NCBI GenBank assembly: GCA_025594325.1
Contig: JANHCV010000019.1
Location: 1 to 58,780, forward strand
Reading direction: 5' to 3'
DNA length: 58,780 nt
DNA from: Blastocladiella emersonii ATCC 22665
Lineage: Eukaryota; Fungi; Blastocladiomycota
Positions 14,564-44,217 of the stretch are shown in pieces (within the stretch, counting starts at the first letter, position 1; the number at the start of each line of letters is the position of its first letter). Both the position numbers and the translations under genes were made by a program. Below the pieces are notes generated by a model. It was not told the DNA's origin. It saw only the letters and a list, made by a program, of their open reading frames with translations, and ran no database searches.

Positions 14564-14635
14564 TGCCGCCTGGGAGGATCGAACACCCGGCCTTTGCTTT
14601 ACGAGAGCAACGCTCTGCCACTGAGCTAAGGCGGC
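14564..14635 (-). tRNA. tRNA-Thr(CGT)
   Basis: GCCGCCTTAGCTCAGTGGCAGAGCGTTGCTCTCGTAAAGCAAAGGCCGGGTGTTCGATCCTCCCAGGCGGCA folds as a cloverleaf with anticodon CGT and one T:T mismatch in the T-stem. Confidence 0.9.
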
Positions 14636-16610: not shown

Positions 16611-16682
16611 GCCGCCTTAGCTCAGTGGCAGAGCGTTGCTCTCGTAAAGCAAAGGCCGGGTGTTCGATCCTCCCAGGCGGCA
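16611..16682 (+). tRNA. tRNA-Thr(CGT), identical to 14564-14635
   Basis: Same 72-nt sequence, followed by TCTTTTT. Confidence 0.9.
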
Positions 16683-18646: not shown

Positions 18647-20541
18647 TCAAAGGCTGCTACTGGGCGACGGCGGCGCAATCTCCTGCGGCTGAGCCAGCGG
18701 GGAATGAGCGCCGACCTCGTGCTGAAGCGCAGGCGGCGGCGTCGCGGTCTCGGGCAGCGGCGGCGTGCTGATGATGTCCCGAGACTGCTGCGGCGGCAGG
18801 ATCGAGAATTCTCCTGCAGCGAGTTTCGACGTGACCATGCCGCGCGTAGGAGACGACGGCGAGCTCCAGATCATGTTGCTCATCAGCGCCATGAGCTGCT
18901 GGTTGTTGAGGATGACCGTCCGCGGCAACTGGTCATCGTCGTCGCGCAAGTGGTTGACTGGCAGGTTGTACGGGTCAAAGTCGAGCGGTTGCTGGTGCAC
19001 GTTGACCGACATGTACAGCTGCTGCAGGTTGGTGGCGTTGCCAAGCGGCGGGTGCGGCGCGTTGCCGAGCGGCGGGTGCGGCGCGTTGCTGAGCGGCGGG
19101 TGCGGCGCGTTGCCGGACAGCAGGTGCGGCGCGTTGCCGAGCGGCGGGTGCGGCGCGTTGCCGAGCGGCGGGTGCGGCGCGTTGCCGAGCGGCGGGTGCG
19201 GCGCGTTGCCGGGCGGCGGGTGCGGCGCGTTGCCGAGCGGCGAGTGGTGGTGGTGCTGCTGCTGCGAGTGCGGGTACTGGGCGCCGCCAAGCGGCAGGTG
19301 CGGGTACTGGGCGCCGCCGAGCGGCAGGTGCGGGTACTGGGCGCCGCCGAGCGGCAGGTGCGGGTACTGGGCGCCGCCAAGTTGCGGATGCGGGTTGAGT
19401 CCTCCTAGATCACAGGTGCGTGAGCTTCAAGAACACGAGCAAGGCTTGGATAAGTTTCTTTCGTCCTGAGCGTACCAGAGACCACATGGTGAGCAGCGTT
19501 GAGGAGAAAGGCGGATAAGGCCGCAAGTGGGTTTGCTGCCAGCAGCGTAGGCGGAAGCGGGGGCGGGGGCGGGGGTGGAAAACTGGTCACCTCCGCAGCT
19601 GCGTGGTAAGAGTTCTGTGAGGAAGGGGTGGGCTGCGAATGGCGCGAGCGAGCACGAGCGTACGGAGCCTGGCGGCGAGGAACGCGACCACTTGAACTGC
19701 GCTGGGTCCGGCCACGGGGCGCGGTGCGCCGAGCGGGTTCAGCGTGCAGCTCGGCCTCATCGTCACCGTACTCGTACTCGTACTCGTACTCATCCGCATC
19801 ACCGTGTGAGAAGCCCGCTGACAACGGGGTCGCCATCATGGACGAGGCGCCGTAGTGCGGGTGCGATGCAGCGGCGGCGGCGGCCATGGCGGCCAACATG
19901 GACGAGGACGAGGCGCTGTGGTGTGGGTGCGGGTGCGACGCAGAAGCGGCGGCGGCGGCCATGGCGGCCGACATGGACGAGGACAAGGCGCCGTGGTGCG
20001 GGTGCGGGTGCGACGCAGCGGTGGCGGCGGCAGCGGCCGTGGCGGCCAACACGGACCAGGGCGACGTCGCCGAAGAGCCCGAGGGTCCGGCGGGGAGCGA
20101 GCCAGGCCCGATACCCGGCACGGACGCTGCAGCCTGCACGCGGGCCGCGAGATCATCACGGGCCTGCTCGGTAGCGGCGCGCAAGGCCCGAGCGGCAGCA
20201 GTTGCAGCCTTCGCCGCACCGGTGAGACGCTTTTCATGCGCGCACAGCTCGTTGTAGAGTCTCTGGGCCATATCGGCCCATGGCGACAAAGCGAAGCGAG
20301 CGGGCAGGGAAGCCGAGCGAAGGACGCGGCGCGCGGCGTCCGCCACGTTTTTGAGGCAGTGAGGGGGCGGATCGAGTTTGCGGGGCTGGGGGAGTTCGTC
20401 ACAAAGGAGGCGGGCGCGGGCGGCGACGCTGTTGCCAGCGACGAGCTGAGTGGCTTGGAGGAGGGTCAGAGAGGGGTCGGCGCGGATGCGGGCTTTGAGA
20501 AGGATGAAGGCTGCGACGATGTACGGCACGGGCCAGGTCAT
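18647..20541 (-). CDS. ORF2 of PHIS element 1 (spliced, about 607 aa, low complexity, with GGAQYPHLPL x4 and GNAPHPPL x~9 tandem repeats)
   Basis: ATG at 20541. A 71-bp phase-1 intron at 19405-19475 (GTACGC...GATCTAG) joins HHVVS-G-GLNPHPQ in frame through to the stop at 18647. Convergent with the transposase inside the TIRs. Confidence 0.72.
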
Positions 20542-21541
20542 GGTGAGGGATGGGTGGGATGGGGGATGGGGGATGGGGGATGGATGGGAGAGGGGGGGAT
20601 TGGGCAAGGAGAAGGAAGACGGTCAAGCGCAGGTCATGGCGAGCGCCTGGCGGGGTCGCGCCGAGTTATATGAGCGAGGCGCGGCATCTGGACGCAAGTG
20701 CGCGGGCGGAGGGTGCCTGAGCCAGCAGCGGAGCCATGGTGAGGAGTGGGCCTGCGAGCGCTGAAGGCCGCCGCGTCAGCACCGAGGAGCCAGTCTGTGG
20801 CTGGGAGTGACGGGCTCCAAATCGGCGATGCGGGCGAGCTGCGTGAGAAGCAATGCATTGGTTCATAGGGCAATGGTTGGTGCAACCTCGGGAGCGAGAG
20901 CCGGCGAGGTCAGGCAGGACGACGACAACAGGGTGACAGGGTGGCGGCAGCCCTTTGGTGGCGGCTGCGAGACAGCGCGAATCAGGCACGTGCCCCGAAA
21001 CCGCGGGAACCGCCGGGTGTCCGCCGCGCTCACCGCTTTCACGCCGCGCTCCACGCCGCGCCTGGTCCAGAAAAAAATTCTGACCGATCAATTTTTTTCT
21101 CTCACTGCGCAACCTCTCCATTTTCATATACTCTTTGATTTTTATAATTTTTCTCTTTTCCTCTTACGTAATCTCCTCCAAGTTATATTTACAATCAATT
21201 AATTGTAATCTGTCCAACCTGGTTGTTTAATTCAATTGTTGCTGATGCACTGCAGTGCTTGGCTCGGCGCCCCTTTTGCCCGCTTCTGCCAGCAGCAGCC
21301 TTGCCTTGACAATCGACACAATAAGGGCCCGTTTGGTTCAGATCAGGTGGATCAGCTGAAAAAGTTGCCACGTTTCACCTCACCCCCGTTCATCTCAGCG
21401 GCCGTGCGAACCAAACGCCCCGCTGGATGAACGCCCCTCCCCCCCCCCGCAATAAAATCTTTCCCACCTCTTTGCAGCCGCACTTATTGCAACGAATCAA
21501 CACCTAACCTCACGCATCGTGTTCTCGAGCCCTCAAACAAC

Positions 21542-22859
21542 ATGGGCAAGGGATACAACCGCAAGCTGCGCGGCCTAATGCTCACAGCCGCCCTCGCTCT
21601 CCTGCGACGTCTCGCTGCTCGCAACGAGCGCCGCTCGTGGGAGCCTATCCGCACGTCCACGCTTTCTGGCGAGTCGTGGGTTCAAGAGCTGCTGACGTGC
21701 AACAGCAAAACGCGTTTTTCGGAAATCGCCCGTATGCCCCGCGAGACCTTCAAGGCCATCTGCCGCCTGTTCCGCGACCGTGGCCTTCTCACCGACGGCC
21801 GCGAGCTGTCCGTCGAGGCGCGCTTCATGGTTTTTCTTGTCATGGCCGGCGAGGGCAGCACCAACCGCAACCTCAGGGAGCGGTTCCAAATCTCTGGCGA
21901 GACCGCGTCCAGGGTTCTGAAGCAGGTGCTCGACGCTCTGTACCGCCTGATGCCCGAGTTCATTGTCCAGCCGTCCGATTCTACGCCCGTGCATGAGCGC
22001 ATCGCCCACGACCCGAAATACGCTCCGTTCCAGAACGCGGTCGGCGCGCTTGACGGAACGCACATCCCGTTTGTTGTGCCCGCCAAGCTTCACGACTCGT
22101 TCCGAAACCGCAAGGGGACCATCTCCTCAAATGTCCTCGCTGCCTGCGACTTTGACTTGAACTTCACCTACGTTCTCGCAGGGTGGGAGGGCAAGGCGCA
22201 CGACTCGCGCGTGCTCTCGGACGCCTTCGCCCGTGGGTTCAAGATCCCCGCCGGCCGCTTCTACCTCGCCGACGGCGGCTACGCAAACCGCACGTCCATC
22301 ATCGTGCCCTTCAGCGGTACCCGCTATCATCTTCGCGAGTTTGCCCGCGGCAAGGATGGGTACGTTCTCACTGCCATGACCATCACGTTGGCGCCATCTC
22401 ATCTGCTTCACCAACGTACGTAGAGTTAAGAACCGCGAAGAGCTTTTCAATCTGCGTCACGCGTCGCTCCGCAACTCCATTGAGCATATCTTTGGCGTGC
22501 TCAAGAAGCGGTTCCGCGTCCTCTCGATTGGCGCGGCCTACCCAATCAAGACTCAAGTCAAGCTTGTGTACGCGCTCTGCACGCTGCACAACATGATCAA
22601 CAAGTGGAACCAAGGCGGCGACGCCTTCTTTCGCGACGCCGAGACGGAGCTCCGGCGCGCGCGGGACGCGGCGCGTGAGGCGCCAGTACGTGGGCACGAG
22701 CCCCTGGACGATGAGAACGAGGAGGACGACGAGGCCGCTGTCCTCGAAGCCTCGCTGGACGGAGCTCGTCAGCGCGGTATCTCGCTTCGGAACCGCGTCG
22801 CAAATGTTCTTTGGACCGAGTACAGGTGCGTCATGGCCGCTCGTGGGACCCGTCTTTGA
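21542..22859 (+). CDS. PIF/Harbinger DDE transposase (spliced, 417 aa)
   Basis: Exons 21542-22359 and 22424-22859 (64-bp intron GTACGT...CGTAG). Motifs GALDGTHIP, NVLAACDFDLNFTYVLAGWEGKAHDSRV, YLADGGY and FNLRHASLRNSIEHIFGVLKKRF. Confidence 0.92.
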
Positions 22860-23172
22860 AGGCGCGAAATAATTGTTGTACCCGCATGCATGCTGTAATA
22901 TACTGATTTGTCAAGTACTATAACGTTAGATAAGCGATTCCAGATGATTTGACGCGTCGCTGAGGTCAGAACGCATCGGTGGAGACGCGTCGATCAATCA
23001 CGTGACGTGCGAGACACTTTGAGAACCACGCGTTTCTCAACGAGTCGCGTCATTTTCGAGCGAAGGGTAACGATTGAAGATACGATGGACACAAAGCCAG
23101 ATGTATTGGACACAAATGGGCGAGAACAAGGCCAGGAAGCAACGCGAGGGGAGGGGGACATGTGCGAGAGAG

Positions 23173-24302
23173 CTACTGAATGAAAAACTCGAGGACGCGC
23201 TTGCGCTTCGATTCGGACACGGCCATGACGCGAAGCGCTTGATCCTCGGTCAGGCGGGTGGCGACGTCGATCTGGTACTCTTCATTGTCGTTGTACGCGT
23301 CCTGGACCCATTCAAGTGCGGCGGTCAGAACGGGCTTGGAGTCGGCGGTTGAGACGCTCTGGAACACCTCCTTGATGCCCATGAGGAATTCCGAGTCCGA
23401 GAGGCGACGCGAGCTGCTGTCCGAAGTGCGGCTGCGCTTGCTGGCGGGGGCCGCGTCGTCTTGACCATCAACACCTTCCACGTCACCAGACTCCTTGCCG
23501 TCCTGCTCGAGGTGCGAGTACTTGCCGGTGGCGGTCGAGCTGCCCCACAGCATGTTGGCCTTCTTGTAGTACGGGAAGGGCTTGCAGCCCGCAGTCAGCT
23601 CCTCCTTGAGCTCTGCCTACAATTGAAGCAGGCCAGGCGCTGTTAGCTCGCCGCGAGTTGACGCGTAACGATATTGAACAAACGTACCGAGAGATCGTTC
23701 CAGAACTCCTCTGGCACGTCGACCGTGCACTCACCCTCATTCCAGGTGCAGCCGTTGCCCGAGTACGACAGAAGCCGTTTTACGGCGCGAAAACAAGTGC
23801 GAAGCTGGAGCCGAACGCTGACGTTGTTAGCGCTACGGTTGACGCGTGTCCGCAAGACAAAGCGTACGTATGTCACGCGGTTCTTGACCTGCTCCGCCGT
23901 AAACTGCATGTTGAACTCGCCCGACAGGGCCTGGGCAATCGACACACGGTGCTGGGCCTTGAGCGTGTTGCTGTCGCCGAGCACGCCGTCGTCAGCGAGG
24001 TTGCAGAAGTGGTCGAGGAGGAAGTTGGTCGACGCGGAGCAGAAGGTGGCCTTGCCGCCGCTGGCCTTGCCGCTGCTGGCCTTGCTGCCACTGGCCTTGC
24101 GCTTGCTTGGCTTGGCGATGGTCACGGGCGGCAGCGGGTTGGTCGGCGTGACAGCAGCGTTGCCGTCGCTCCCAGCAGCGTCGTCATCTGCATCCTCGTC
24201 GCTATCGGCGGGCGGCGGCGGGATTTCGGGCACGTTCTTGACGATCTCCTCGATGGACATGGCCGTACGGCCAGCGCGCTTTTTGCTTGACGGGGGAGCC
24301 AT
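23173..24302 (-). CDS. Myb/SANT-like DNA-binding protein (ORF2 of PIF element 2; spliced, 331 aa)
   Basis: Exons 24302-23868, 23804-23688 and 23616-23173. Joined sequence ...FTAEQVKNRVTY|LRTCFRAVKRLLSYSGNGCTWNEGECTVDVPEEFWNDLS|AELKEELTAGCKPFPYYKKANMLWGSSTATG matches the Harbinger-type Myb/SANT pattern. Confidence 0.88.
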
Positions 24303-25865
24303 TCTTTTCGGCTTTGAGGGAGGACGGGGGAGAGAGAGCGAGTTACTTTGGAGGGAAACGGCGTTTATATAGGCCGGGGAGCACAGCCTGAAGGTTTCGG
24401 GGGCGAGCAGACGGGCGATTCAGCGACGAGGGTTCCATTCAGCTCACCCGGGGGTTGAACCAAACGCCGCGATGAACACGACGGGGTGAAAATGCCACGT
24501 TTCAGCTGGGTGAACACCGGACCGTGTAAAATCGATTGATCCACCTGATTCACCCCGGAACCAAACGGGCCCTAAGTGAGAGCAACTGCCCGAGCCCTTG
24601 CAATGCTCAACAGCACCCTTGTTGTGCTGGACCGGTTGACTCTTTGCTGCGTTGCACTGGTTTGCGGTTGTGATCCAGGTTGGTTTCCATCAAGCAAGCC
24701 CCTTGCCTGGTCTCTACACCCTGCTTGTCATTCCCATGTCCTGCCTGTCCCACACCACCCTGCTCTACCATTTCGCTCCTCCTGCCATTTTTGCTGTCTT
24801 GCTTGTCCCTCTCTTATCGCGCTGGCTGTGATTGTTGTCACGCTGTGCTCTCTGCTTCTCAGCCATTTCCCGTCCTCTCCGCACCAACAGTACTGCTGTT
24901 GCCATGTTCAAACTCCCTCTTCTTTTGATTGTGGAAATCTCTTGTGTACCGTTCACATATCTGGCCATTCTTGTGCTAGACCTTTTGCCTCTTTGCTGCG
25001 TTGGGTCGGTTGGTATTTGTGATCCACTTGTGGTTGCAGATTTATCCTTATAGTGTTGTGCCACCACCACCAGCAGCAGCACCACCACCATTGGCAACCT
25101 TTGCTGCAGATGGCTACGCTCTGTGGTTGCGTTGCACCGCCCTATCTTGCACAGAGCGACTGAGGTCCACCTCCTTGACATACTTTGTTGTTGCAAACGA
25201 TTGCTGAAATCTCACCTGGTGAAGAATTCACAGCTCATTTCTGTTACAGTTGCTTGCTATTGCTGCTCTCTGTTTTATCCCACGCCCTCCTGCCTGTGTT
25301 GCTGGTTTGCTGCTTTGACTTCCTACGCTGCTTTGCTGCACCTGCTTACTGTCCCTTCTCGCACTTTGTCCAGTTTTTGCAGCGCCTGCTTGGTGCGCAC
25401 GCGCTTCCCCTCTCTGGCCATCACCTACGTTGCTCCCACCCTTAGCTGTTCTGGTTGTCAGCTCAATCCTTGTCTAGTCCCTTGGCCCAACTGCAGCCAA
25501 GTTTACCTCAGCTTTCTCGGCTTCCATTTCTGCCTGGTTGCCTGCTTGCTTGATTTGCTCATCAACTCCATGGTCCTGGTGGTCTGTCTGCATTGTTCAT
25601 GCCACACACCTCCTGTAGCTGCTGTTGTTGTAATTAACTGTTGTTTCCACGTCCTGCTCCTCCACGTAGTTGCACGTGCATGTGTCACTAATGCTTGTCA
25701 TCTACGTTTGTTTGCCTTTGCCTTAGTTTGCCATGGCCCCGCTCCAGCTCATTGAGCTTCACAGTCTCACAAGTTACACGCTGTCTGTGGCCGCCTGCCA
25801 ACATGCCTTGTTCCTTCCTTTCCATTCGCTCTACCCACCCAGTCTTAGCCATGTCATGCGCGCGC

Positions 25866-26034
25866 GCACTTGCCCAATTTGCTTGAGTTGCCCCTAGGCA
25901 GCCAGGATGGCATAGTCGAGTCCTAGTGCATGTTTGCCTGGATAGAACCACTGAGTGTTCGATTCCAGGCAGCATGCGCGCTTTTGTTGCGTTTTGTGAA
26001 TCGATTTCCATTTCCATTCCATTTTACATTTTCA
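25866..26034 (+). repeat. Dispersed repeat, copy 2
   Basis: Diverged direct repeat of 17029-17217. Confidence 0.75.
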
Positions 26035-27058
26035 GAGCGCCCTTACCATTTCGTGCTTGACCGCCCTGCTCCTTGTTCGCTGCTGCCGTTTGTTCCACAA
26101 TCCTTTTGCAAGGCCGCGAGCAGGAGGAAAAAAAAATACAGAAAAGGTTTTTGGCAACTGGTAGCGTTTGCAACTGCTCCCCTCTGTGTGCTGGGCTTTC
26201 AATAGAGACGTTACAGAAAACGAGTGCCTTGTTTCACTCCACGCCTCGGCCATTCTCCAATGAATAATGCAATGGGCTCTATTTGCTTCGTTCAGCTCGA
26301 ATGTACATAAGATATCAGGATGGATCGCGCGCCACGCATGTGATCCGAAGGAAAAGAGGTGGTCCGCGGCTCAAAACGCCAGTTCGAGGCAACGGACACC
26401 TTGCGCTCTTTCGTTCGAGCGAAGATGTTACCATTGTGGCCTGCCCTCAGACTGGCCCGGCATCGTGGGCTGTACGATATCAATGAAGCACCATGTAAAT
26501 CCCCTCTGCAAAAAGTGGAGGCCCTACGAAAAACCATGCATCAACTCGTGCAGCCGTCTTGGGTCTCGACTGGCGCACTGTTGCTGTCGGCAACAACTCG
26601 GGCTTCACACCGGGCGGGCGAGGCGTGCTCTTGTGCGTCGGACATCCGCCTGGTGGTCTGGCGTTGCGCGCGCATGGCCGACCCGCGGTGGGACCGCCCA
26701 CGCGCCTTGCAGCGCGCGGGTGGGTCATGCGCTCACTCAGTGGTCCGCTCCGCGCGGGCTGCGGGTGGCACGGAATTTTCCCTCGCCACGGATTAATGGC
26801 CACGACGTTCACTCGCCTCTGTGCCAGCGGACACGCCAAACCATCCGCACGTTTGGGTCGCGATGGGCGCTGCGGAGTGTTTAGGGGTCGCTTGACTTTG
26901 ATTTACTCTGTGGCGTTTGTCTTTGGTGCGTGGTCAACAACTTTCTCCATCCCCCCCTTGGGCTGTCCTAGTTCGCAGGCTCACGACTCTCGCTCGCACC
27001 TCGCTAGTAGAGATGGAGATCAACGAAATTTTTTGACACTGTCCCGCCAACCGCGCCG

Positions 27059-28450
27059 TTGGCCGGCGCCACCGCCGCGGCCCTTGCGCTTCCCCCACCA
27101 GTTGTACTCGACAACAACATCCCGGAAGAGCTCAGCGCCGGCGACGACCAGGCCGTGTTTTCTGATCCCGAGGGTACGGGTGATTCCAACCCAGAGGACA
27201 AGGAGGGCGGCCTTGACAGGCTCTTGGAGTCCGACGAGGAGGCAGGCGGTGACAACGCGTCCTTGGTCAAGGACGAGCCTGGTTTGCCGCTGTTGCCGGG
27301 GTACTCGCCGTTGACGCCGGGGTACACACTGGCGTCACCAAGCGTCGCACCCTCGTCACCGGCCTTTGACCCACTGCGTTCACTGTCACTGCCGCCGTCG
27401 ACGCCCGCCTCAGGCGCCGGGAAGGTGGAGGCGGTGTCCGTGCTGCACCAGGTCCTCGACGCGGTCAACAACTTCAGCCAGCAGCTCGGCAAGGTGACCA
27501 AGGAGCTCAAGACCATGGAGGCCAAGCGGGTCGCCAACCGCAAGCGCATTGACAAGCGCCTTGACGACACCAAGAAGCGGGCCGCCGACAGCGTGCGCGA
27601 GTTCCACCGCGTCCTCGCTAACATCGCGCCGCTCCAGACAGGTCACAACACGGGTATTGACACAATCGACAAGGCAAACACGACCGAGGGGACGTTCCCG
27701 TTGTGCAAGAAGGTCATGCACCTGGACCCGCTCGACTTCACGTACATGGCCCAGCAGATGTGGGCCGCGCTCCACGCGGTCAAGTGGTAAAAGCTGTACA
27801 CGCCCCCAGAGCTGCAGGAGGAGATCCGCTGGTGGCTCGTAATGCGCAAGAAGGACGTCCGACCTGATTGGCGCTTGCGCGAGGACTCGACGTTGATCAC
27901 GGCTGTCATCAACCTTGTGTAGAAGGGCATCAAGGGCTTGGTCACCGTGCACAACAAGGCCGCCGCCATGGGTGCCCTGCGGCTGTTGCTGGAGCCGTGC
28001 TTCCGTCCCCTTTGCAACGCCGTGCGCATGCTCGCCCACATGCTCCACGCCAAGACCAAGGCCAAGCGCAAGCGCATCACCAAGGCGCTTGGCGTCACAG
28101 ACATGTTTGACCCGGCGGCAATCCAGGTCGCGCGCAAGTCAGTCAACAACACGCCATACCTCATGGGCGACTCAAACACCTTTGTCGAGAAGATCCGCAA
28201 CACGCAGTCGCTCGCCAGTATCTTTGAGGGCGACAAGGGTGGCAAGCGCACCTTGTTGTCCGCAGGTCTCAGCATGCCTGCCGCCGCCAAGCGCGGTAAG
28301 TCCAAGGCAGGGCGCGGCCCATTGTCCTTGTTGGGCTTGGGTTTGGGCTTGTTGGCCGCCCCGTCCAAGGCCAAGGCCTTGAAGAAGCCCGCGCAGAAGC
28401 CGACCGCCAAGGGCAAGGCCAAGAGGAAGGCCAAGGATCGCAGTTTGTGA
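27059..28450 (+). pseudogene. DIRS ORF1 (gag-like) with two in-frame stops
   Basis: ORFs 27059-27790 and 27938-28450 are in one frame, broken by TAA 27788-27790 and TAG 27920-27922. Lys-rich C-terminus. Assigned by position. Confidence 0.65.
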
Positions 28451-28530
28451 TTTTGCTCATTTTCCCCTTATAAAAACGGCTTCGCTGCTCTACGCACCTC
28501 GATCTCTTGCGTTCAGAACACTCATGAGAG

Positions 28531-30785
28531 TTGGTCCTCGTTGAACTTCTTGGGTTAGAAATGGAAGCGACTCGCGCGCAGATCGCGGTCACCTGGGTCG
28601 CGCGGCTGATCACTGCTGTGGACTCGATTGTGACGGCACCTGCCCCGCCTGTTCCGCAACTCGTCGTCGACCCCAACGCTGCCGAGCTCATGTTCCCGCA
28701 CCTGCGCCCCGACCTGCCAGTGGGCGGTCGCCTGCGGCACTTCTCGGACGCGTGGGACGCTGTGATGACAAACACAGTGGTTCGCAACATTGTGGCCAAC
28801 AGGGTACGCCTCTTCACGCACGACTTGCCGCAAAAAGGTCCTGTGCCGCCGCCGTACGTGCTCTCTTGCAACGACGAGCTCGCGCTCGAGTCTGAGATGG
28901 ACGCACTGGCAGCCAAGGGCGCGGGCGTGCGGTGCAACGTACCGCGCGTCGCGGCGGCGGGCCAGCAGTGGTCCAACGCGTTTGTTGTGCACCAGGCTGA
29001 CAAGGTCCGCCCAATCGCCAACTACAGACCCCTCAACATGTGCATGTCAACAACAGGTTTTTGCATGGAGACAATCTCAGACATCCGCGCGGCGCTCCCG
29101 GGCCACACTCACATGGCGTCAGTGGACATCTTGGACGCGTACCTCCACGTGCCGCTGCACCAGTCGGCGTCGGAGCTCATGCGGATCCAGCTCGCATTGA
29201 CGGGTTTCCGGCCGACGTCGCTCATGTTTGGCGTGAACGTGGCGCCACGCCTGTTCACCAAGGTCCTGTGGGAGCCGCTCTTGTGGCTACGCTTGCAGGG
29301 CGTGGTGGTCTTTGCCTACCTGGACGACCTGCTGATACTGGGGCGGTTGGCCAAGGAGTGCTGGCGTGGTGTTGTGCTGACGGCGCGTCTACTGCAGACG
29401 CTCAGGTTCCTCATCAAGTGGCGCAAGTCGACGCTACTGCCGTCTACAACCATTGACACCTGGGCTGGCACCTCAACCTGTCAGCGGGCACGCTCTTGGT
29501 GCCAGTGGACCGCGTCAAGTTGATGCGGGAGCGACTCCAGTCGCTGCACGGGTCACCGCAACACCCAGCTCGCTGCTGGGCCTCAATCCTCGGTCGGCTC
29601 GAGTTGATGTCGCCGGCGTACCCAGGCATGCGGGTGTACCTCCAGCGGCTGCAGAAGGAACTGGCCGACACGGTCAACGACTCGGGTTTGTGGGCAACGT
29701 TGGTGATGGCGTCGGACGAGATCATGTCAGACCTTGACTTGCTGCGCATGATCCTACGCAAGGGCGAGGGAGTCCTGTTTGTGCCGAAGCCTTCAACAAT
29801 CACAATCCGCACAGACTTGAGCGGTCGCGGGTGGGGCGCCTGCTGCCACCTGGATGGGTCGCTGGTCTGCATGGGCCAACTGTGGACGTTGGAGGAGCTC
29901 GCGCTGGCGCGTCTTCGCCGGACCGCGAACCTGCACATCAACACGCTCGAGAGCGCGGCGGTTCTTTGGGCTCTGCAGGTCCTCAAGCAAGCCCACGGCG
30001 TGTCGTGGCACAACCAGTCGATCCTCCTCAAGTGCAACAACATGACCACGGTCGCGTACCTCAACAAGGGCGGCGGGACGCGCAGCCTTGAGACCACGGC
30101 GGTCACAAGGACGACGCTGAATTTCCTTTGGGAGGGGAAGGCGACAATCCGCGCAGTCCACCTACCAGGCGTCGAGAACACGGCGGACAAGGACTCGCGC
30201 GTCTTCTCAAACGAACTGCACAACTACATGCTGGTCCGCCCGGTCTTCAAGTGGATCTGCTCGGTGCTGGGGTCACTGACGATCGACCTGTTTGCGGCGC
30301 CGCAGACGCGCCTGCTGCCGAGCTACTGCTTGCGGATCTCGTCGGATGAGGCCATGTCGACAGACGCGTTCCTGCTGCAGTGGGGCAACTTGGGCCTGGC
30401 GTGGGTGCACCCGCTGGTCCCGCTCATCCCGTGGGTGCTCTCAAAGGTCCGCAACGACCGCGCCAAGGTGATCCTGCTGGTTCCCCACTGGCCGGGGGCG
30501 AGGTGGTGGCTGGTGCTGCTGCAGATGCTGTGCAAGGCCCCGCTGCTGGTCGCAATTGACTCGTCAACGTTCAACCGCACCCCATTGGGGCTGCCACCAG
30601 CCACGGCGGCCGTGATCGCCTGTCAATGCTCTGGTCTCAATGGTCCGCTGAGGGCATTCCTCGAGGTGTGCAGAAATACCTTGAGAAAGCGCTCTTGGAC
30701 GGCTCGGTCAAGCAGTACAGCAGCCATTTCAGATGGTACTCGCGCTGGTGCATTGTACGGGGTCACAATCCCTTTGCACCATTGA
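28531..30785 (+). pseudogene. DIRS pol: reverse transcriptase - RNase H - DAM-type methyltransferase-like domain, frameshifted
   Basis: RT motifs DILDAYLHVP, FGVNVAPRLFTK and YLDDLL. A 1-bp loss near 29455-29457 (IxHLGWHL) shifts into the RNase H frame (TDLSGRGWG, HINTLES, CNNMT, HLPGVENTAD). MT-like DLFAAP...DAF...WVHPL...VPHWP follows. Confidence 0.9.
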
Positions 30786-31678
30786 TCGCGGTTCCCTTCA
30801 AGTTCCTGACGCACGAGCACGAGCGTGGGCTTGCCACCTCAACTGTCACGTCGGCCAAGTCGGCGCTGTTGTTGACGCTTGGCCCCATCTTCAACGGCAA
30901 GATGCTCGGCGAGGTCGAGGCGACGGAGACGTTAATGAAAGCCTTCTGCGAAATTCGTCCCAAGGGAGCCGAGGCGGTGCAGAACACGTATGACCCGCAG
31001 CTACGGCTCGACGTGGTTGCAAACTGGGGTCTGGATGAGGACATGCGCATCGACCTGCTCGTGGCCAAGGTCGCGCTCCTGTTCATGGTGTACTCGCGCC
31101 GCCGGCTCTGTACGCTGGTCAAGATCTCCTCCGCCTCGATTGTGGTCAGCAACAACGGCAAGTCGTGGGCAGCGATTGAGGTCAAGCCCAAGGAGCGCAC
31201 AATGAAGGTCAACACCAAGACCATCGAGTTTGACCCCTCGGGCCAGGGTCGTGGTCCCTTGTTCCTGGCGGCATGGCGCTGCTACATGGAGCGGACCAAG
31301 GACGACTGGCTGGAAGGCTGCGACTTGGTGTTCATCACTGTGTCCAAGCCGTACTGCTCGCCAAAGGCGGACACGGTGCGGAACTGGGTCAAGAAGGTCT
31401 TCAAGGAGTCCAACCTGCCCGAGCGCTTCAAGCCCCACTCAATCTGTGCAGCGACAACTACTGAGCTTCTGCTTGCAGGCGTCTCGCCCAAGAAGGTCGC
31501 GGAGGGGATTTGGGCACGAACCACGACTATGTACAAGTACTACAACAAGTTGGCGACACGGAAGTCGGCGCGCAAGACACTGGCCAAGTTGGCGCCTCGC
31601 AAGACGATGGGGTCGGCCACGACCAAGTTGGCGCCAGCCCAGCACGCAAGTCACTGCGGGTGGCAGCCCGGAAGTTGA
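30626..31678 (+). pseudogene. DIRS tyrosine recombinase (open frame; catalytic HxxR Arg changed to Cys)
   Basis: YSRRRLCTL (Arg box), FKPHSIC (HxxR>HxxC, TGT at 31445-31447) and W...TMYKYY (catalytic Tyr region). Overlaps the end of pol as in DIRS elements. Confidence 0.85.
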
Positions 31679-31752
31679 CGCGCTGATTGTGGTTCATATC
31701 GTAACGACGGGAGGAGAGGCCGCGGCCGAATACATTCAGCCGTATCTAGTCA

Positions 31753-31795
31753 CATTGCATTATTCATTGGAGAATGGCCGAGGCCTGGAGTGAAA
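31753..31795. repeat. DIRS internal complementary region (ICR)
   Basis: 42/43 match to 32507-32549 and complementary to 26232-26274. Adjacent hairpins at about 31797-31839 and 31847-31865. Confidence 0.75.
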
Positions 31796-34478
31796 TGGGG
31801 GTTTGACAAGGAGCCGTAGGCAACAACGTCAAATCCCCCGTTTGACGAATGGCCGAAGGCCATTCGTGTAAGAATAACGCACCCTCCCACCGTCCCTCTG
31901 CTACAGTTGGTGAGTTCTTTGAACCATCGCCACTCAGCGACCAGCCCGCGGACGTTTCTAACGTTGGTGGTCCTTCAATGGTGCTGCGCGGCAAGGAGTT
32001 TTTTCCTTGCCACCTTTGTGTTCCTCCACGCCTCGGCCATTCTCCTGATCTGTCTTTTCTTTTTGCGAGACGTGCGATCGCGACGCGCCGCGCCACGTGT
32101 GTGGCGCAGCGCGTCGCGGCCACATCGCGCGTTGAGCCACGGTTTTCCCCCACCGCGTTCTTTTCCCGTCACTTTATTTTTTCCAACTGGGTTTTTTCGT
32201 TTGGGTTTTTCTGCGGTGGGCGGTTTTTCACCCGGGCTAGCGGGCTTCGCCCGCTTCGCGCTACCGCGCAGACCTTGTTTCGCAGACAAGGTAACGGGTC
32301 TCTCACTCCCAGTTGATGGCCTGGCCTGCCCAGGGGGCAGGCCACAATGGTAACATCTTCGCTCGAACGAAAGAGCGCAAGGTGTCCGTTGCCTCGAACT
32401 GGCGTTTTGAGCCGCGGACCACCTCTTTTCCTTCGGATCACATGCGTGGCGCGCGATCCATCCTGATATCTTATGTACATTCGAGCTGAACGAAGCAAAT
32501 AGAGCCCATTGCATTATTCATTGGAGAATGGCCGAGGCGTGGAGTGAAACAAGGCACTCGTTTTCTGTAACGTCTCTATTGAAAGCCCAGCACACAGAGG
32601 GGAGCAGTTGCAAACGCTACCAGTTGCCAAAAACCTTTTCTGTATTTTTTTTTCCTCCTGCTCGCGGCCTTGCAAAAGGATTGTGGAACAAACGGCAGCA
32701 GCGAACAAGGAGCAGGGCGGTCAAGCACGAAATGGTAAGGGCGCTCTGAAAATGTAAAATGGAATGGAAATGGAAATCGATTCACAAAACGCAACAAAAG
32801 CGCGCATGCTGCCTGGAATCGAACACTCAGTGGTTCTATCCAGGCAAACATGCACTAGGACTCGACTATGCCATCCTGGCTGCCTAGGGGCAACTCAAGC
32901 AAATTGGGCAAGTGCGCGCGCGCATGACATGGCTAAGACTGGGTGGGTAGAGCGAATGGAAAGGAAGGAACAAGGCATGTTGGCAGGCGGCCACAGACAG
33001 CGTGTAACTTGTGAGACTGTGAAGCTCAATGAGCTGGAGCGGGGCCATGGCAAACTAAGGCAAAGGCAAACAAACGTAGATGACAAGCATTAGTGACACA
33101 TGCACGTGCAACTACGTGGAGGAGCAGGACGTGGAAACAACAGTTAATTACAACAACAGCAGCTACAGGAGGTGTGTGGCATGAACAATGCAGACAGACC
33201 ACCAGGACCATGGAGTTGATGAGCAAATCAAGCAAGCAGGCAACCAGGCAGAAATGGAAGCCGAGAAAGCTGAGGTAAACTTGGCTGCAGTTGGGCCAAG
33301 GGACTAGACAAGGATTGAGCTGACAACCAGAACAGCTAAGGGTGGGAGCAACGTAGGTGATGGCCAGAGAGGGGAAGCGCGTGCGCACCAAGCAGGCGCT
33401 GCAAAAACTGGACAAAGTGCGAGAAGGGACAGTAAGCAGGTGCAGCAAAGCAGCGTAGGAAGTCAAAGCAGCAAACCAGCAACACAGGCAGGAGGGCGTG
33501 GGATAAAACAGAGAGCAGCAATAGCAAGCAACTGTAACAGAAATGAGCTGTGAATTCTTCACCAGGTGAGATTTCAGCAATCGTTTGCAACAACAAAGTA
33601 TGTCAAGGAGGTGGACCTCAGTCGCTCTGTGCAAGATAGGGCGGTGCAACGCAACCACAGAGCGTAGCCATCTGCAGCAAAGGTTGCCAATGGTGGTGGT
33701 GCTGCTGCTGGTGGTGGTGGCACAACACTATAAGGATAAATCTGCAACCACAAGTGGATCACAAATACCAACCGACCCAACGCAGCAAAGAGGCAAAAGG
33801 TCTAGCACAAGAATGGCCAGATATGTGAACGGTACACAAGAGATTTCCACAATCAAAAGAAGAGGGAGTTTGAACATGGCAACAGCAGTACTGTTGGTGC
33901 GGAGAGGACGGGAAATGGCTGAGAAGCAGAGAGCACAGCGTGACAACAATCACAGCCAGCGCGATAAGAGAGGGACAAGCAAGACAGCAAAAATGGCAGG
34001 AGGAGCGAAATGGTAGAGCAGGGTGGTGTGGGACAGGCAGGACATGGGAATGACAAGCAGGGTGTAGAGACCAGGCAAGGGGCTTGCTTGATGGAAACCA
34101 ACCTGGATCACAACCGCAAACCAGTGCAACGCAGCAAAGAGTCAACCGGTCCAGCACAACAAGGGTGCTGTTGAGCATTGCAAGGGCTCGGGCAGTTGCT
34201 CTCACTTAGGGCCCGTTTGGTTCCGGGGTGAATCAGGTGGATCAATCGATTTTACACGGTCCGGTGTTCACCCAGCTGAAACGTGGCATTTTCACCCCGT
34301 CGTGTTCATCGCGGCGTTTGGTTCAACCCCCGGGTGAGCTGAATGGAACCCTCGTCGCTGAATCGCCCGTCTGCTCGCCCCCGAAACCTTCAGGCTGTGC
34401 TCCCCGGCCTATATAAACGCCGTTTCCCTCCAAAGTAACTCGCTCTCTCTCCCCCGTCCTCCCTCAAAGCCGAAAAGA

Positions 34479-35921: not shown

Positions 35922-37239
35922 TCAAAGACGGGTCCCACGAGCGGCCATGACGCACCTGTACTCGGTCCAAAGAACATTTGCGACGCGGTTCCGAAGCGAG
36001 ATACCGCGCTGACGAGCTCCGTCCAGCGAGGCCTCGAGGACAGCGGCCTCGTCGTCCTCCTCGTTCTCATCGTCCAGGGGCTCGTGCCCACGTACTGGCG
36101 CCTCACGCGCCGCGTCCCGCGCGCGCCGGAGCTCCGTCTCGGCGTCGCGAAAGAAGGCGTCGCCGCCTTGGTTCCACTTGTTGATCATGTTGTGCAGCGT
36201 GCAGAGCGCGTACACAAGCTTGACTTGAGTCTTGATTGGGTAGGCCGCGCCAATCGAGAGGACGCGGAACCGCTTCTTGAGCACGCCAAAGATATGCTCA
36301 ATGGAGTTGCGGAGCGACGCGTGACGCAGATTGAAAAGCTCTTCGCGGTTCTTAACTCTACGTACGTTGGTGAAGCAGATGAGATGGCGCCAACGTGATG
36401 GTCATGGCAGTGAGAACGTACCCATCCTTGCCGCGGGCAAACTCGCGAAGATGATAGCGGGTACCGCTGAAGGGCACGATGATGGACGTGCGGTTTGCGT
36501 AGCCGCCGTCGGCGAGGTAGAAGCGGCCGGCGGGGATCTTGAACCCACGGGCGAAGGCGTCCGAGAGCACGCGCGAGTCGTGCGCCTTGCCCTCCCACCC
36601 TGCGAGAACGTAGGTGAAGTTCAAGTCAAAGTCGCAGGCAGCGAGGACATTTGAGGAGATGGTCCCCTTGCGGTTTCGGAACGAGTCGTGAAGCTTGGCG
36701 GGCACAACAAACGGGATGTGCGTTCCGTCAAGCGCGCCGACCGCGTTCTGGAACGGAGCGTATTTCGGGTCGTGGGCGATGCGCTCATGCACGGGCGTAG
36801 AATCGGACGGCTGGACAATGAACTCGGGCATCAGGCGGTACAGAGCGTCGAGCACCTGCTTCAGAACCCTGGACGCGGTCTCGCCAGAGATTTGGAACCG
36901 CTCCCTGAGGTTGCGGTTGGTGCTGCCCTCGCCGGCCATGACAAGAAAAACCATGAAGCGCGCCTCGACGGACAGCTCGCGGCCGTCGGTGAGAAGGCCA
37001 CGGTCGCGGAACAGGCGGCAGATGGCCTTGAAGGTCTCGCGGGGCATACGGGCGATTTCCGAAAAACGCGTTTTGCTGTTGCACGTCAGCAGCTCTTGAA
37101 CCCACGACTCGCCAGAAAGCGTGGACGTGCGGATAGGCTCCCACGAGCGGCGCTCGTTGCGAGCAGCGAGACGTCGCAGGAGAGCGAGGGCGGCTGTGAG
37201 CATTAGGCCGCGCAGCTTGCGGTTGTATCCCTTGCCCAT
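35922..37239 (-). CDS. Mirror copy of transposase 2 (one synonymous difference, GAG vs GAA)
   Basis: Mirror of 21542-22859. Confidence 0.92.
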
Positions 37240-42098: not shown

Positions 42099-42170
42099 TG
42101 CCGCCTGGGAGGATCGAACACCCGGCCTTTGCTTTACGAGAGCAACGCTCTGCCACTGAGCTAAGGCGGC
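42099..42170 (-). tRNA. tRNA-Thr(CGT), mirror copy
   Basis: Mirror of 16611-16682. Confidence 0.9.
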
Positions 42171-44145: not shown

Positions 44146-44217
44146 GCCGCCTTAGCTCAGTGGCAGAGCGTTGCTCTCGTAAAGCAAAGGCCGGGTGTTC
44201 GATCCTCCCAGGCGGCA
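44146..44217 (+). tRNA. tRNA-Thr(CGT), mirror copy
   Basis: Mirror of 14564-14635. Confidence 0.9.

Follow-up and report, generated by a model that had tools for sequence, protein, structure and literature searches.

A real 58.8-kb palindrome in Blastocladiella emersonii with a decayed DIRS1-like retrotransposon at its centre

Organization of the palindromic contig

The window, that is, the whole stretch of 58,780 nucleotides that was analysed, is the entire contig C12 of Blastocladiella emersonii ATCC 22665 and forms a 58.8-kb palindrome. The arms, 1-26446 and 32335-58780, are 26,446 bp each and mirror each other with one mismatch around a spacer of 5,888 nt (26447-32334). Since the window is the whole contig, neither arm has a unique outer flank inside it. 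At the only mismatch, GAAGCC (A at 22748) is matched to GAGGCC at mirror position 36033; the two motifs are indistinguishable once homopolymer-compressed, and the site lies inside a multi-copy PIF-type transposon with 30+ copies of 98-99% identity. An Rfam search of 24500-32700 gave zero matches. Palindrome centres were also sought among other loci retrieved from the genome, and none was found. The features of the window were as follows.

1-26231, no strand assigned: left arm outside the DIRS1-like element, defined by mirror identity; transposon-rich, with multi-copy families
1-510, in the left arm: last 169 codons of the glutamate synthase (GOGAT) gene, in a frame that continues from contig C3
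Within the left arm: four tRNA genes (tRNA-Ala, tRNA-Cys and two tRNA-Thr)
22748, no strand assigned: sole arm mismatch, at which mirror position 36033 differs
26232-26446, + strand: left terminus (ITR) of the element and also the last 215 bp of the left arm, starting with TTT
26447-32334, + strand: spacer and element body; no other copy in the assembly; k-mer depth 136 versus 274 for the arms in run X1
28528-29520, + strand: reverse transcriptase open frame (RVT_1, 41 bits within 28531-29523; cut-off 29.6)
30626-31675, + strand: tyrosine recombinase open frame, recognized by a weak Phage_integrase match and by homologue search
31753-31795, + strand: left ICR; matches the reverse complement of 26232-26274 at 42/43 and has the AAA circular-junction triplet at its end
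31793-31885, + strand: presumed right ICR, from an alignment read against the family architecture
32322-32344, no strand assigned: hairpin with a perfect 10-bp stem and a 3-nt loop (TGGCCTGCCC AGG GGGCAGGCCA), straddling the boundary between spacer and right arm
32335-32549, - strand: right ITR copy, an exact mirror of 26232-26446; depth 283 in X1
32550-58780, no strand assigned: right arm outside the element, the mirror of 1-26231

The DIRS1-like element and its termini

The spacer is the single-copy body of a DIRS1-like retroelement, and this is the sole DIRS copy in the 32.65 Mb assembly. With a reverse transcriptase, a tyrosine recombinase and a left ICR all present, the proposal of the earlier note that the palindrome is centred on a DIRS element was borne out. 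DIRS elements have been reported in Blastocladiomycota (Muszewska et al. 2013, PMC3783388). The reverse transcriptase passes the RVT_1 cut-off, as found for the Ty3/gypsy-related enzymes of DIRS1-like elements. The recombinase itself gave only a weak Phage_integrase match, under the Pfam cut-off; its search returned 1,071 homologues (best E 4e-27), several of which pass this cut-off, and the closest homologue is positioned after gag-like and RVT_1 genes. The arginine of the recombinase HxxR motif is replaced by cysteine (KPHSIC), whereas the homologues have KPHSxR, with arginine in 6/6 compared, and the enzyme is probably inactive owing to this substitution in its predicted catalytic site. The coding region is broken across three frames into pieces of 259, 175, 331, 442 and 372 codons. 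The description of the body as heavily mutated was therefore true in part, namely in the splitting of the coding region and the replacement of the catalytic arginine. No Pfam match to a methyltransferase domain was found in 29496-30785 at E<=0.01, in what is a decayed element. The contigs that carry the nearest recombinase homologues, a 4.8-kb contig from Logan without terminal repeats and a second one of 3 kb, are not informative on the termini.

In its architecture, the element resembles the DIRS1-like retrotransposons described by Piednoel et al. 2011 (PMC3266345): it has a reverse transcriptase and a tyrosine recombinase, a TTT start, a 43-nt left ICR ending in the AAA junction, a right-ICR-like stretch and a putative ITR of 215 bp, a length within the reported 66-316 bp. 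The TTT start with an AAA junction is typical of this family (PMC3266345). It differs from them in its right terminus, which copies the left one, lacks complementarity to the right ICR and carries no extension, as well as in the absence of a detected methyltransferase, a recombinase without the catalytic arginine, and a single genome copy.

The left end is well defined. The 42/43 match of the ICR sets it at TTT 26232, as had been proposed, and an independent relic of 76 nt on contig C20 starts at the equivalent base. No significant extension of this relic into the ITR interior or the element body was found. The suggested comparison with other genomic copies yielded no second full copy, only the C20 relic, which confirmed the left start at 26232 and not the right end. 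Comparison of the arms, together with this start base, places the end of arm identity at 26446/32335, 215 bp into the element, and the two ITR segments are identical, both as described before. The patchy similarity noted for ~20 nt past the boundary is marginal (p about 0.03 at 20 nt) and is gone by 60 nt. The 215-bp inverted pair is perfect but continuous with the palindrome arms, and its native status is inseparable from the duplication.

The right end is of a different nature. The segment 31840-31885 is a ~60% direct-orientation copy of 26231-26275, with the GGCCATTC core in common, and the right-ICR-like stretch as a whole has a depth of about 1x. Judging from this alignment, the element would have lost a right extension of about 44 nt, and 31796-31839 would be its complementary counterpart. 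The complement of 31793-31885 was absent at 32505-32549 and across the assembly. Over its outer ~45 nt, the right terminus matches the left terminus and not the element's own right ICR, so that the native right end and the right flank are gone. We read the absent complement as loss of the native right end and not as evidence against assignment to the DIRS1-like family. The earlier note was accurate in stating that no native 3' extension exists, since the right terminus duplicates the left one when read with the published architecture (PMC3266345), and that the sequence to the right of 32549 is the mirror of the left flank: the arm comparison gave this result, and the complement of 31796 onward is absent from both the window and the assembly.

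Hairpins with a 10-bp stem and a 3-nt loop occur only twice in 58.6 kb. The 10-mer of the one at the boundary (32322-32331) also ends the left arm (26437-26446), and its complement opens the right arm. An extra partial copy of the left terminus lies in direct orientation on the + strand at 32016-32045 (27/30 to 26229-26258). The whole of 32016-32331 was considered as a diverged direct copy of the ITR and rejected: only the first 27 and the last 10 nt match, and the interior similarity is not significant.

Read depth and chromosomal position

Depth was taken from the k-mer depth of contigs from three runs, X1 (the 2022 run and probably the source of the assembly), X2 and X3. The runs, four in all, derive from a single sample and a single study, and the objects compared are contigs, not single spanning molecules. 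Contigs 26417-31782 and 31755-32364 of X1 had depths of 136.4 and 127.8, respectively, and contigs 32335-32536 and 32509-34231 had depths of 283 and 274.5. The flank contigs of X2 and X3 (32507-34231 and 32207-34231, respectively) are unbroken across 32549/32550; the depths of body and flank were 35.4 and 98.6 in X2 and about 7-8 and 19.2 in X3. The ratio of the depth of the ITR and flank to that of the body was 2.0 in X1 and 2.4-2.8 in X2 and X3. Mean coverage in the genome paper, about 190x (8,400x/44), lies between 136 and 274 and does not fix the single-copy baseline; therefore, only the 2:1 ratio is used. Neither loose ends at 32549/32550 nor an alternative flank at the outer end of the ITR were found in the contigs of X1, X2 and X3. 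The sequenced DNA does contain the inverted duplication: the examination of spanning sequences, suggested as a check, gave contigs that cross the right ITR into the mirror flank, and no other flank, in three runs of one sample.

The palindrome is chromosomal, since position 1 of C12 continues contig C3 in frame inside the glutamate synthase gene. Joining C3 (reverse-complemented, starting at its position 1) to the first base of C12 gives a continuous GOGAT reading frame, and the two contigs abut without gap or overlap. A second copy of the 5' part of GOGAT or of C3:1-2200, which would be the other outer flank, was not found in the assembly. For the published B. emersonii assembly, this means that the unplaced contig C12 is a true structure and that its place is the start of C3. 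The genome paper mentions no palindromes or inverted repeats.

Origin of the palindrome

The explanation we prefer, with moderate confidence, is that a real chromosomal palindrome at the start of C3, with a dead DIRS1-like element as its spacer, was formed by fold-back or template switching between the inverted termini of this element. The ancestral element would have had a normal right end, in which the inner part of the ITR was strictly complementary to the left ITR, and beyond which lay a divergent outer part and then about 44 nt of extension that matched the right ICR. The right ITR would have paired with the left one. A break distal to the element, as supposed in the earlier note, may have been the route, in which case the resected 3' strand would fold back, the ITRs would anneal and the non-homologous tail would be clipped. 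Template switching at a replication fork, or an exchange at the ITRs between sister chromatids, is equally possible and would yield the same product. From there, synthesis or exchange would run outward, first over the outer left terminus and then over the left flank, and the native right terminus and right flank would be replaced by a mirror copy; the right arm would thus be the copy, and the arms would end at contig position 1. Among the findings in favour of this explanation are that the genome's only DIRS copy falls exactly at the centre of the palindrome and that the sequence distal to the right repeat is lost, since neither the assembly nor the contigs from three runs contain an alternative flank or extension. 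This explanation needs the 215-bp identity, in an otherwise decayed element, to come from original identity or from later arm-to-arm correction, and it leaves unexplained the 10-bp hairpin at the boundary of the right arm and spacer and the third copy of the 10-mer.

A fold-back through microhomology inside the element would explain the 100% identity of the "ITRs" of a dead element automatically, and we consider it unlikely. The 215-bp "right ITR" would then be non-native: with GGGCAGGCCA as a native sequence at 32335-32344, one arm of the 10-bp hairpin, a nascent strand or 3' end terminating in it would have annealed to TGGCCTGCCC at 26437-26446 and been extended back over the element's first 215 nt and on through the left flank, with loss of the true right ITR, extension and flank. 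The presence of the 10-mer at both 26437-26446 and 32322-32331, with its complement beginning the right arm, and the rarity of such hairpins fit this course of events, as does the just marginal similarity beyond the boundary. However, the 3' end would far more easily pair with its own hairpin partner 3 nt off. The break would also be confined to a narrow stretch from 32344 to the native right ITR, which offers about 170-200 bp of better homology, and the copy must land where the native right ITR is expected, after the ICRs.

The duplication could extend past the contig as part of a much larger or older palindrome, with arms running on into C3, an outer part that was collapsed or purged, and position 1 as a mere assembler break. 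We regard this as improbable; it concerns the extent only and is compatible with pairing of the ITRs as the best explanation. The exact abutment of C12 and C3, the absence of the second outer flank from the assembly and the aggressive purging (60% identity, 10% coverage) speak for it, while the homopolymer-compressed arm of 20,092 nt is well under the upper k of LJA (40,001) and fits a whole-repeat vertex with two different entries. We favour the view that such a vertex, together with trimming of the overlap from C3 by purge_dups, would account for the exact abutment. The maximum vertex size of LJA was rejected as the factor setting the arm length, the compressed arm being 20,092 nt and not 40,001.

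The possibility that the true locus consists of the left flank, the DIRS element and a unique right flank, and that the contig folds at the ITR or derives from chimeric molecules, is very improbable. It draws on the fact that the entire contig is palindromic without unique ends, on the small size of C12 in an assembly from which purging left 21 of 247 contigs, and on the origin of every run from one sample. LJA built the assembly from HiFi reads of 10.5 kb, working in homopolymer-compressed space with k=501 and K=5001; the genome paper names SRR19593111 as the HiFi run. The smallest k, 501, exceeds the 215-bp ITR, so the ITR cannot collapse in the graph. There was no alternative flank in three runs, the arm-to-body depth was 2.0, 2.8 and about 2.5, and, according to the genome paper, the Illumina and HiFi libraries were prepared from separate DNA preparations. 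The arm mismatch vanishes on homopolymer compression, as it should if the arm was one repeat vertex in a read-supported graph. An assembler turning around at the ITR, which had been raised as giving the same geometry, is contradicted by the unbroken contigs in three runs, the 2:1 depth and the value of k, and the artefact reading as a whole is largely refuted. Insertion of a complete DIRS element at the exact centre of an older palindrome is hardly credible, for although such elements make no target-site duplication and symmetric flanks are formally possible, the analysis of the termini already contradicts it: the right terminus reproduces the left one perfectly, lacks complementarity to the right-ICR-like 31793-31885 and has no extension, the recombinase is dead while the arms are identical, and hitting the exact symmetry axis is very unlikely.

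Fold-back between inverted repeats also underlies human inv-dup-del rearrangements, the formation of the Tetrahymena rDNA palindrome and the linear amplicons of Leishmania. The mechanism class is already well established, and the present finding is an added example, not a principle. In yeast, inverted Alu repeats that lie as far as 30 kb apart fold back once the DNA is single-stranded, which requires annealing by Rad52/Rad59 and tail removal by Rad1-Rad10 (Ait Saada et al. 2023, PMC10164571); by analogy, these are the steps proposed for the C12 palindrome. In both cases, the long mirror arms end on their inner side in two inverted repeats, each a few hundred bp in length and separated by kilobases; the stretch between them is single-copy and the non-homologous tail past the distal repeat is lost. 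In C12, by contrast, the host is a wild-type zoosporic fungus, the repeats are the ends of a DIRS retrotransposon, and the event is known from its product alone. ODIRA (PMC4689423) and fork template switching share with the present case short inverted repeats that steer the nascent strand to the opposite template and give inverted junctions, but ODIRA produces interstitial inverted triplications, whereas the tested flank of C12 is present at 2x, not 3x. Palindromes maintained by gene conversion, of the sex-chromosome type, likewise have near-identical arms of kilobases to tens of kilobases and a unique spacer; C12 differs from them in having a recognisable, presumably pre-existing inverted repeat at the inner boundaries, a clue to its origin.

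The wider role suggested for DIRS elements, as general nucleation sites of chromosome-scale palindromes, is unsupported by a genome with one DIRS copy and a palindrome of 58.8 kb. Gene amplification, suggested along with it, is not evident, as transposons make up most of what the arms contain, next to four tRNA genes and the 3' fragment of a gene. A literature search found no paper tying DIRS termini to palindrome formation. We only tentatively entertain the idea that B. emersonii habitually makes and keeps young near-perfect palindromes of tens of kb, seeded by short or long inverted homologies near a break or stalled fork, among which the DIRS-centred one would, as tentatively, be the clearest seed. 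If this were true, suppression of fold-back repair would be unusually weak in the B. emersonii lineage, which would offer a natural wild-type system to study palindromic amplification. Most likely, the C12 palindrome is a natural example of the known repeat-driven fold-back process. Its seed is legible from the sequence: the ICRs of the element predict the right end, and a copy of the left end was found instead.

A palindromic contig and its read support

The window comprises all 58,780 bp of contig C12, from the 32.65-Mb assembly of 21 contigs. It is palindromic from end to end, with arms at 1-26446 and 32335-58780 and a spacer of 5,888 nt. The limit of arm identity, the match of 31753-31795 to the reverse complement of 26232-26274 (42/43), and the mirrored left flank directly past 32549 were all as the earlier note had described. 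Base-by-base comparison of the arms revealed a single mismatch, 22748 versus 36033 (GAAGCC versus GAGGCC), located inside a transposon with >30 copies elsewhere at 98%–99% identity. In run X1, the k-mer depth of this 3.25-kb PIF element (21324-24575) was about 9,800, and the element appears to have been recently active.

The genome of Blastocladiella emersonii ATCC 22665 was assembled from 10.5-kb HiFi reads with La Jolla Assembler (LJA); purge_dups, purging with minimap2 that started from 247 contigs, and Pilon then led to the 21 contigs, and Illumina and HiFi libraries came from separate DNA preparations (PMC9730499). LJA takes homopolymer-compressed reads and uses k=501, then K=5001. Since k is 501, its graph cannot collapse a 215-bp repeat, and it must be reads that lead from the spacer into the mirrored flank. 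The arm mismatch disappears upon homopolymer compression, which agrees with the arm having been a single repeat vertex that was afterwards expanded or polished twice.

Logan contigs (not single molecules) of four runs from one sample and one study, not independent of the assembly, were placed on 28300-34299.

Depth and flank contigs in three sequencing runs
Run; body depth; ITR and flank depth; flank contig
X1; 136.4 (26417-31782), 127.8 (31755-32364); ITR 283 (32335-32536), flank 274.5; 32509-34231
X2; 35.4; ITR/flank 98.6; 32507-34231
X3; about 7-8; ITR/flank 19.2; 32207-34231

The flank contigs of all three runs cross 32549/32550 without a break, and no loose ends were found there in any run placed. 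Breaks at 31755-31782 and 32507-32538 are as expected, because the ICR and the ITR share a 32-mer. Therefore, all ITR copies adjoin one flank, with two ITR-plus-flank copies per body. The palindrome is real, not an assembler turnaround. Had the insertion been hemizygous or the right flank distinct, a branch would be expected at the outer ITR end, and the runs contained no such branch.

A decayed DIRS1-like element without its right end

The spacer encodes two characteristic frames:
reverse transcriptase frame, in the spacer, RVT_1 above the Pfam cut-off
recombinase frame of 350 codons, in the spacer, 1,071 homologues, best E 4e-27

Several homologues of the 350-codon frame pass the Phage_integrase cut-off, and on its own contig the closest homologue is preceded by a gag-like gene and an RVT_1 gene. 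DIRS1-like elements have ITRs of 66-316 bp, strictly complementary in the inner part and divergent in the outer part, two ICRs overlapping on a 3-bp junction, a right extension of 9-75 nt, and frequently a TTT start and AAA junction (PMC3266345). The C12 element likewise starts with TTT, and its 43-nt left ICR ends in AAA. A 76-nt relic on contig C20 likewise begins at base 26232, after which it departs from the flank sequence of the window, independently supporting this base as the element end. To judge from its sequence, the element is dead, since its coding region is broken across three frames and the HxxR arginine of the recombinase, kept in six homologues, is replaced by cysteine. A search of the assembly found no other DIRS copy.

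Region 31840-31885 copies the left terminus in direct orientation at approximately 60%, with the common core GGCCATTC, and looks as a right ICR should. If so, the native right end would be the reverse complement of 31796-31885. This sequence is absent from the observed right terminus, a perfect copy of the left one, and from the whole assembly; depth over 31796-32300 is single-copy. Thus, the right end predicted earlier, complementary to 31796 onward, is indeed missing here, but there is no second genomic copy to define it. A third copy of the 5' terminus (32016-32045, direct orientation, 27/30) lies downstream of both ICRs and is not predicted by the DIRS1-like architecture. Just outside the left end, a motif of about 50 nt (26151-26202, mirror 32579-32630) recurs at at least 25 genome sites with 83%–88% identity and has no Rfam match.

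Origin of the palindrome

The product runs from left flank through left terminus, body, and inner ITR to the mirrored outer left terminus and left flank, while the native right end is gone. This order would result if the two ITRs paired and copying or exchange then proceeded outward. In yeast, inverted repeats spaced up to 30 kb apart have been shown to fold back once the DNA is resected, the non-homologous tail being removed (PMC10164571). Template switching or sister-chromatid exchange at the ITRs would give the same centre, indistinguishable here from fold-back. The C12 palindrome is a fresh example of a kind of rearrangement already established by experiment; a literature search turned up no paper that links DIRS termini with palindromes, and there is no mention of palindromes in the genome paper (PMC9730499). 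It is unlikely that chance placed the sole DIRS copy exactly at a palindrome centre and set the boundaries within the termini of the element.

We rate lower the priming of the copy by 10-nt microhomology rather than by the native 215-bp ITR. The left arm ends in the 10-mer TGGCCTGCCC, which recurs 3 nt ahead of the right arm, a placement that allows such priming; the priming would also account for perfect ITR identity in a decayed element. However, the recurring 10-mer and the 10 nt that open the right arm form a perfect hairpin, a feature for which ITR pairing does not account, and this local partner would compete strongly; moreover, a native ITR offering much greater homology would be expected a little further out. 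The alternative that a complete DIRS element landed in a palindrome already present conflicts with the right terminus, which is not native.

The proposal that DIRS elements are general nucleation sites was not supported: their termini are one seed among several. Genome searches with the arm transposons gave many pairs with constant coordinate sums, implying further large palindromes within chromosome-scale contigs. On C3, the coordinates of three families add up to 972,458 (972,455 for the inner pairs), and therefore a palindrome would span at least 435,695-536,763 (≥100 kb, centre near 486,229). Inverted pairs also point to centres on C3 near 94.4 kb, 661.9 kb, and 991.7 kb and to others on C4, C6, C7, and C16. 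No adaptive amplification is apparent, since transposons make up most of what the arms contain, along with four tRNA genes and the 3' fragment of a gene. Nested in each arm, two identical tRNA-Thr(CGT) genes (14564-14635 and 16611-16682; mirrors 42099-42170 and 44146-44217) form a 73-nt perfect inverted repeat, 1,973 nt apart.

Position on the chromosome

The genome has a single Glu_synthase domain, at C3:2248-3351 (minus strand). When reverse-complemented C3 and C12 are abutted at their respective positions 1, the GOGAT frame reads through without interruption (...VIHGRDP, join, REYSTLTTEF...), with zero bases missing or repeated; therefore, C12 continues C3. The 26.4-kb arm was probably a repeat vertex exceeding read length, and C12 would then be the graph edge "arm + spacer + arm," the overlapping arm having been trimmed off C3 by purge_dups. 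At 20,092, the compressed arm is shorter than the LJA upper k of 40,001, suggesting that the arms end at the contig end, inside GOGAT; the flank beyond the second arm was not found in the assembly. The gene is thus split, its 5' part being at C3:1-3351 (open frame of 1,917 aa) and its last 169 codons at C12 1-510, and these codons are present twice because C12 is palindromic.
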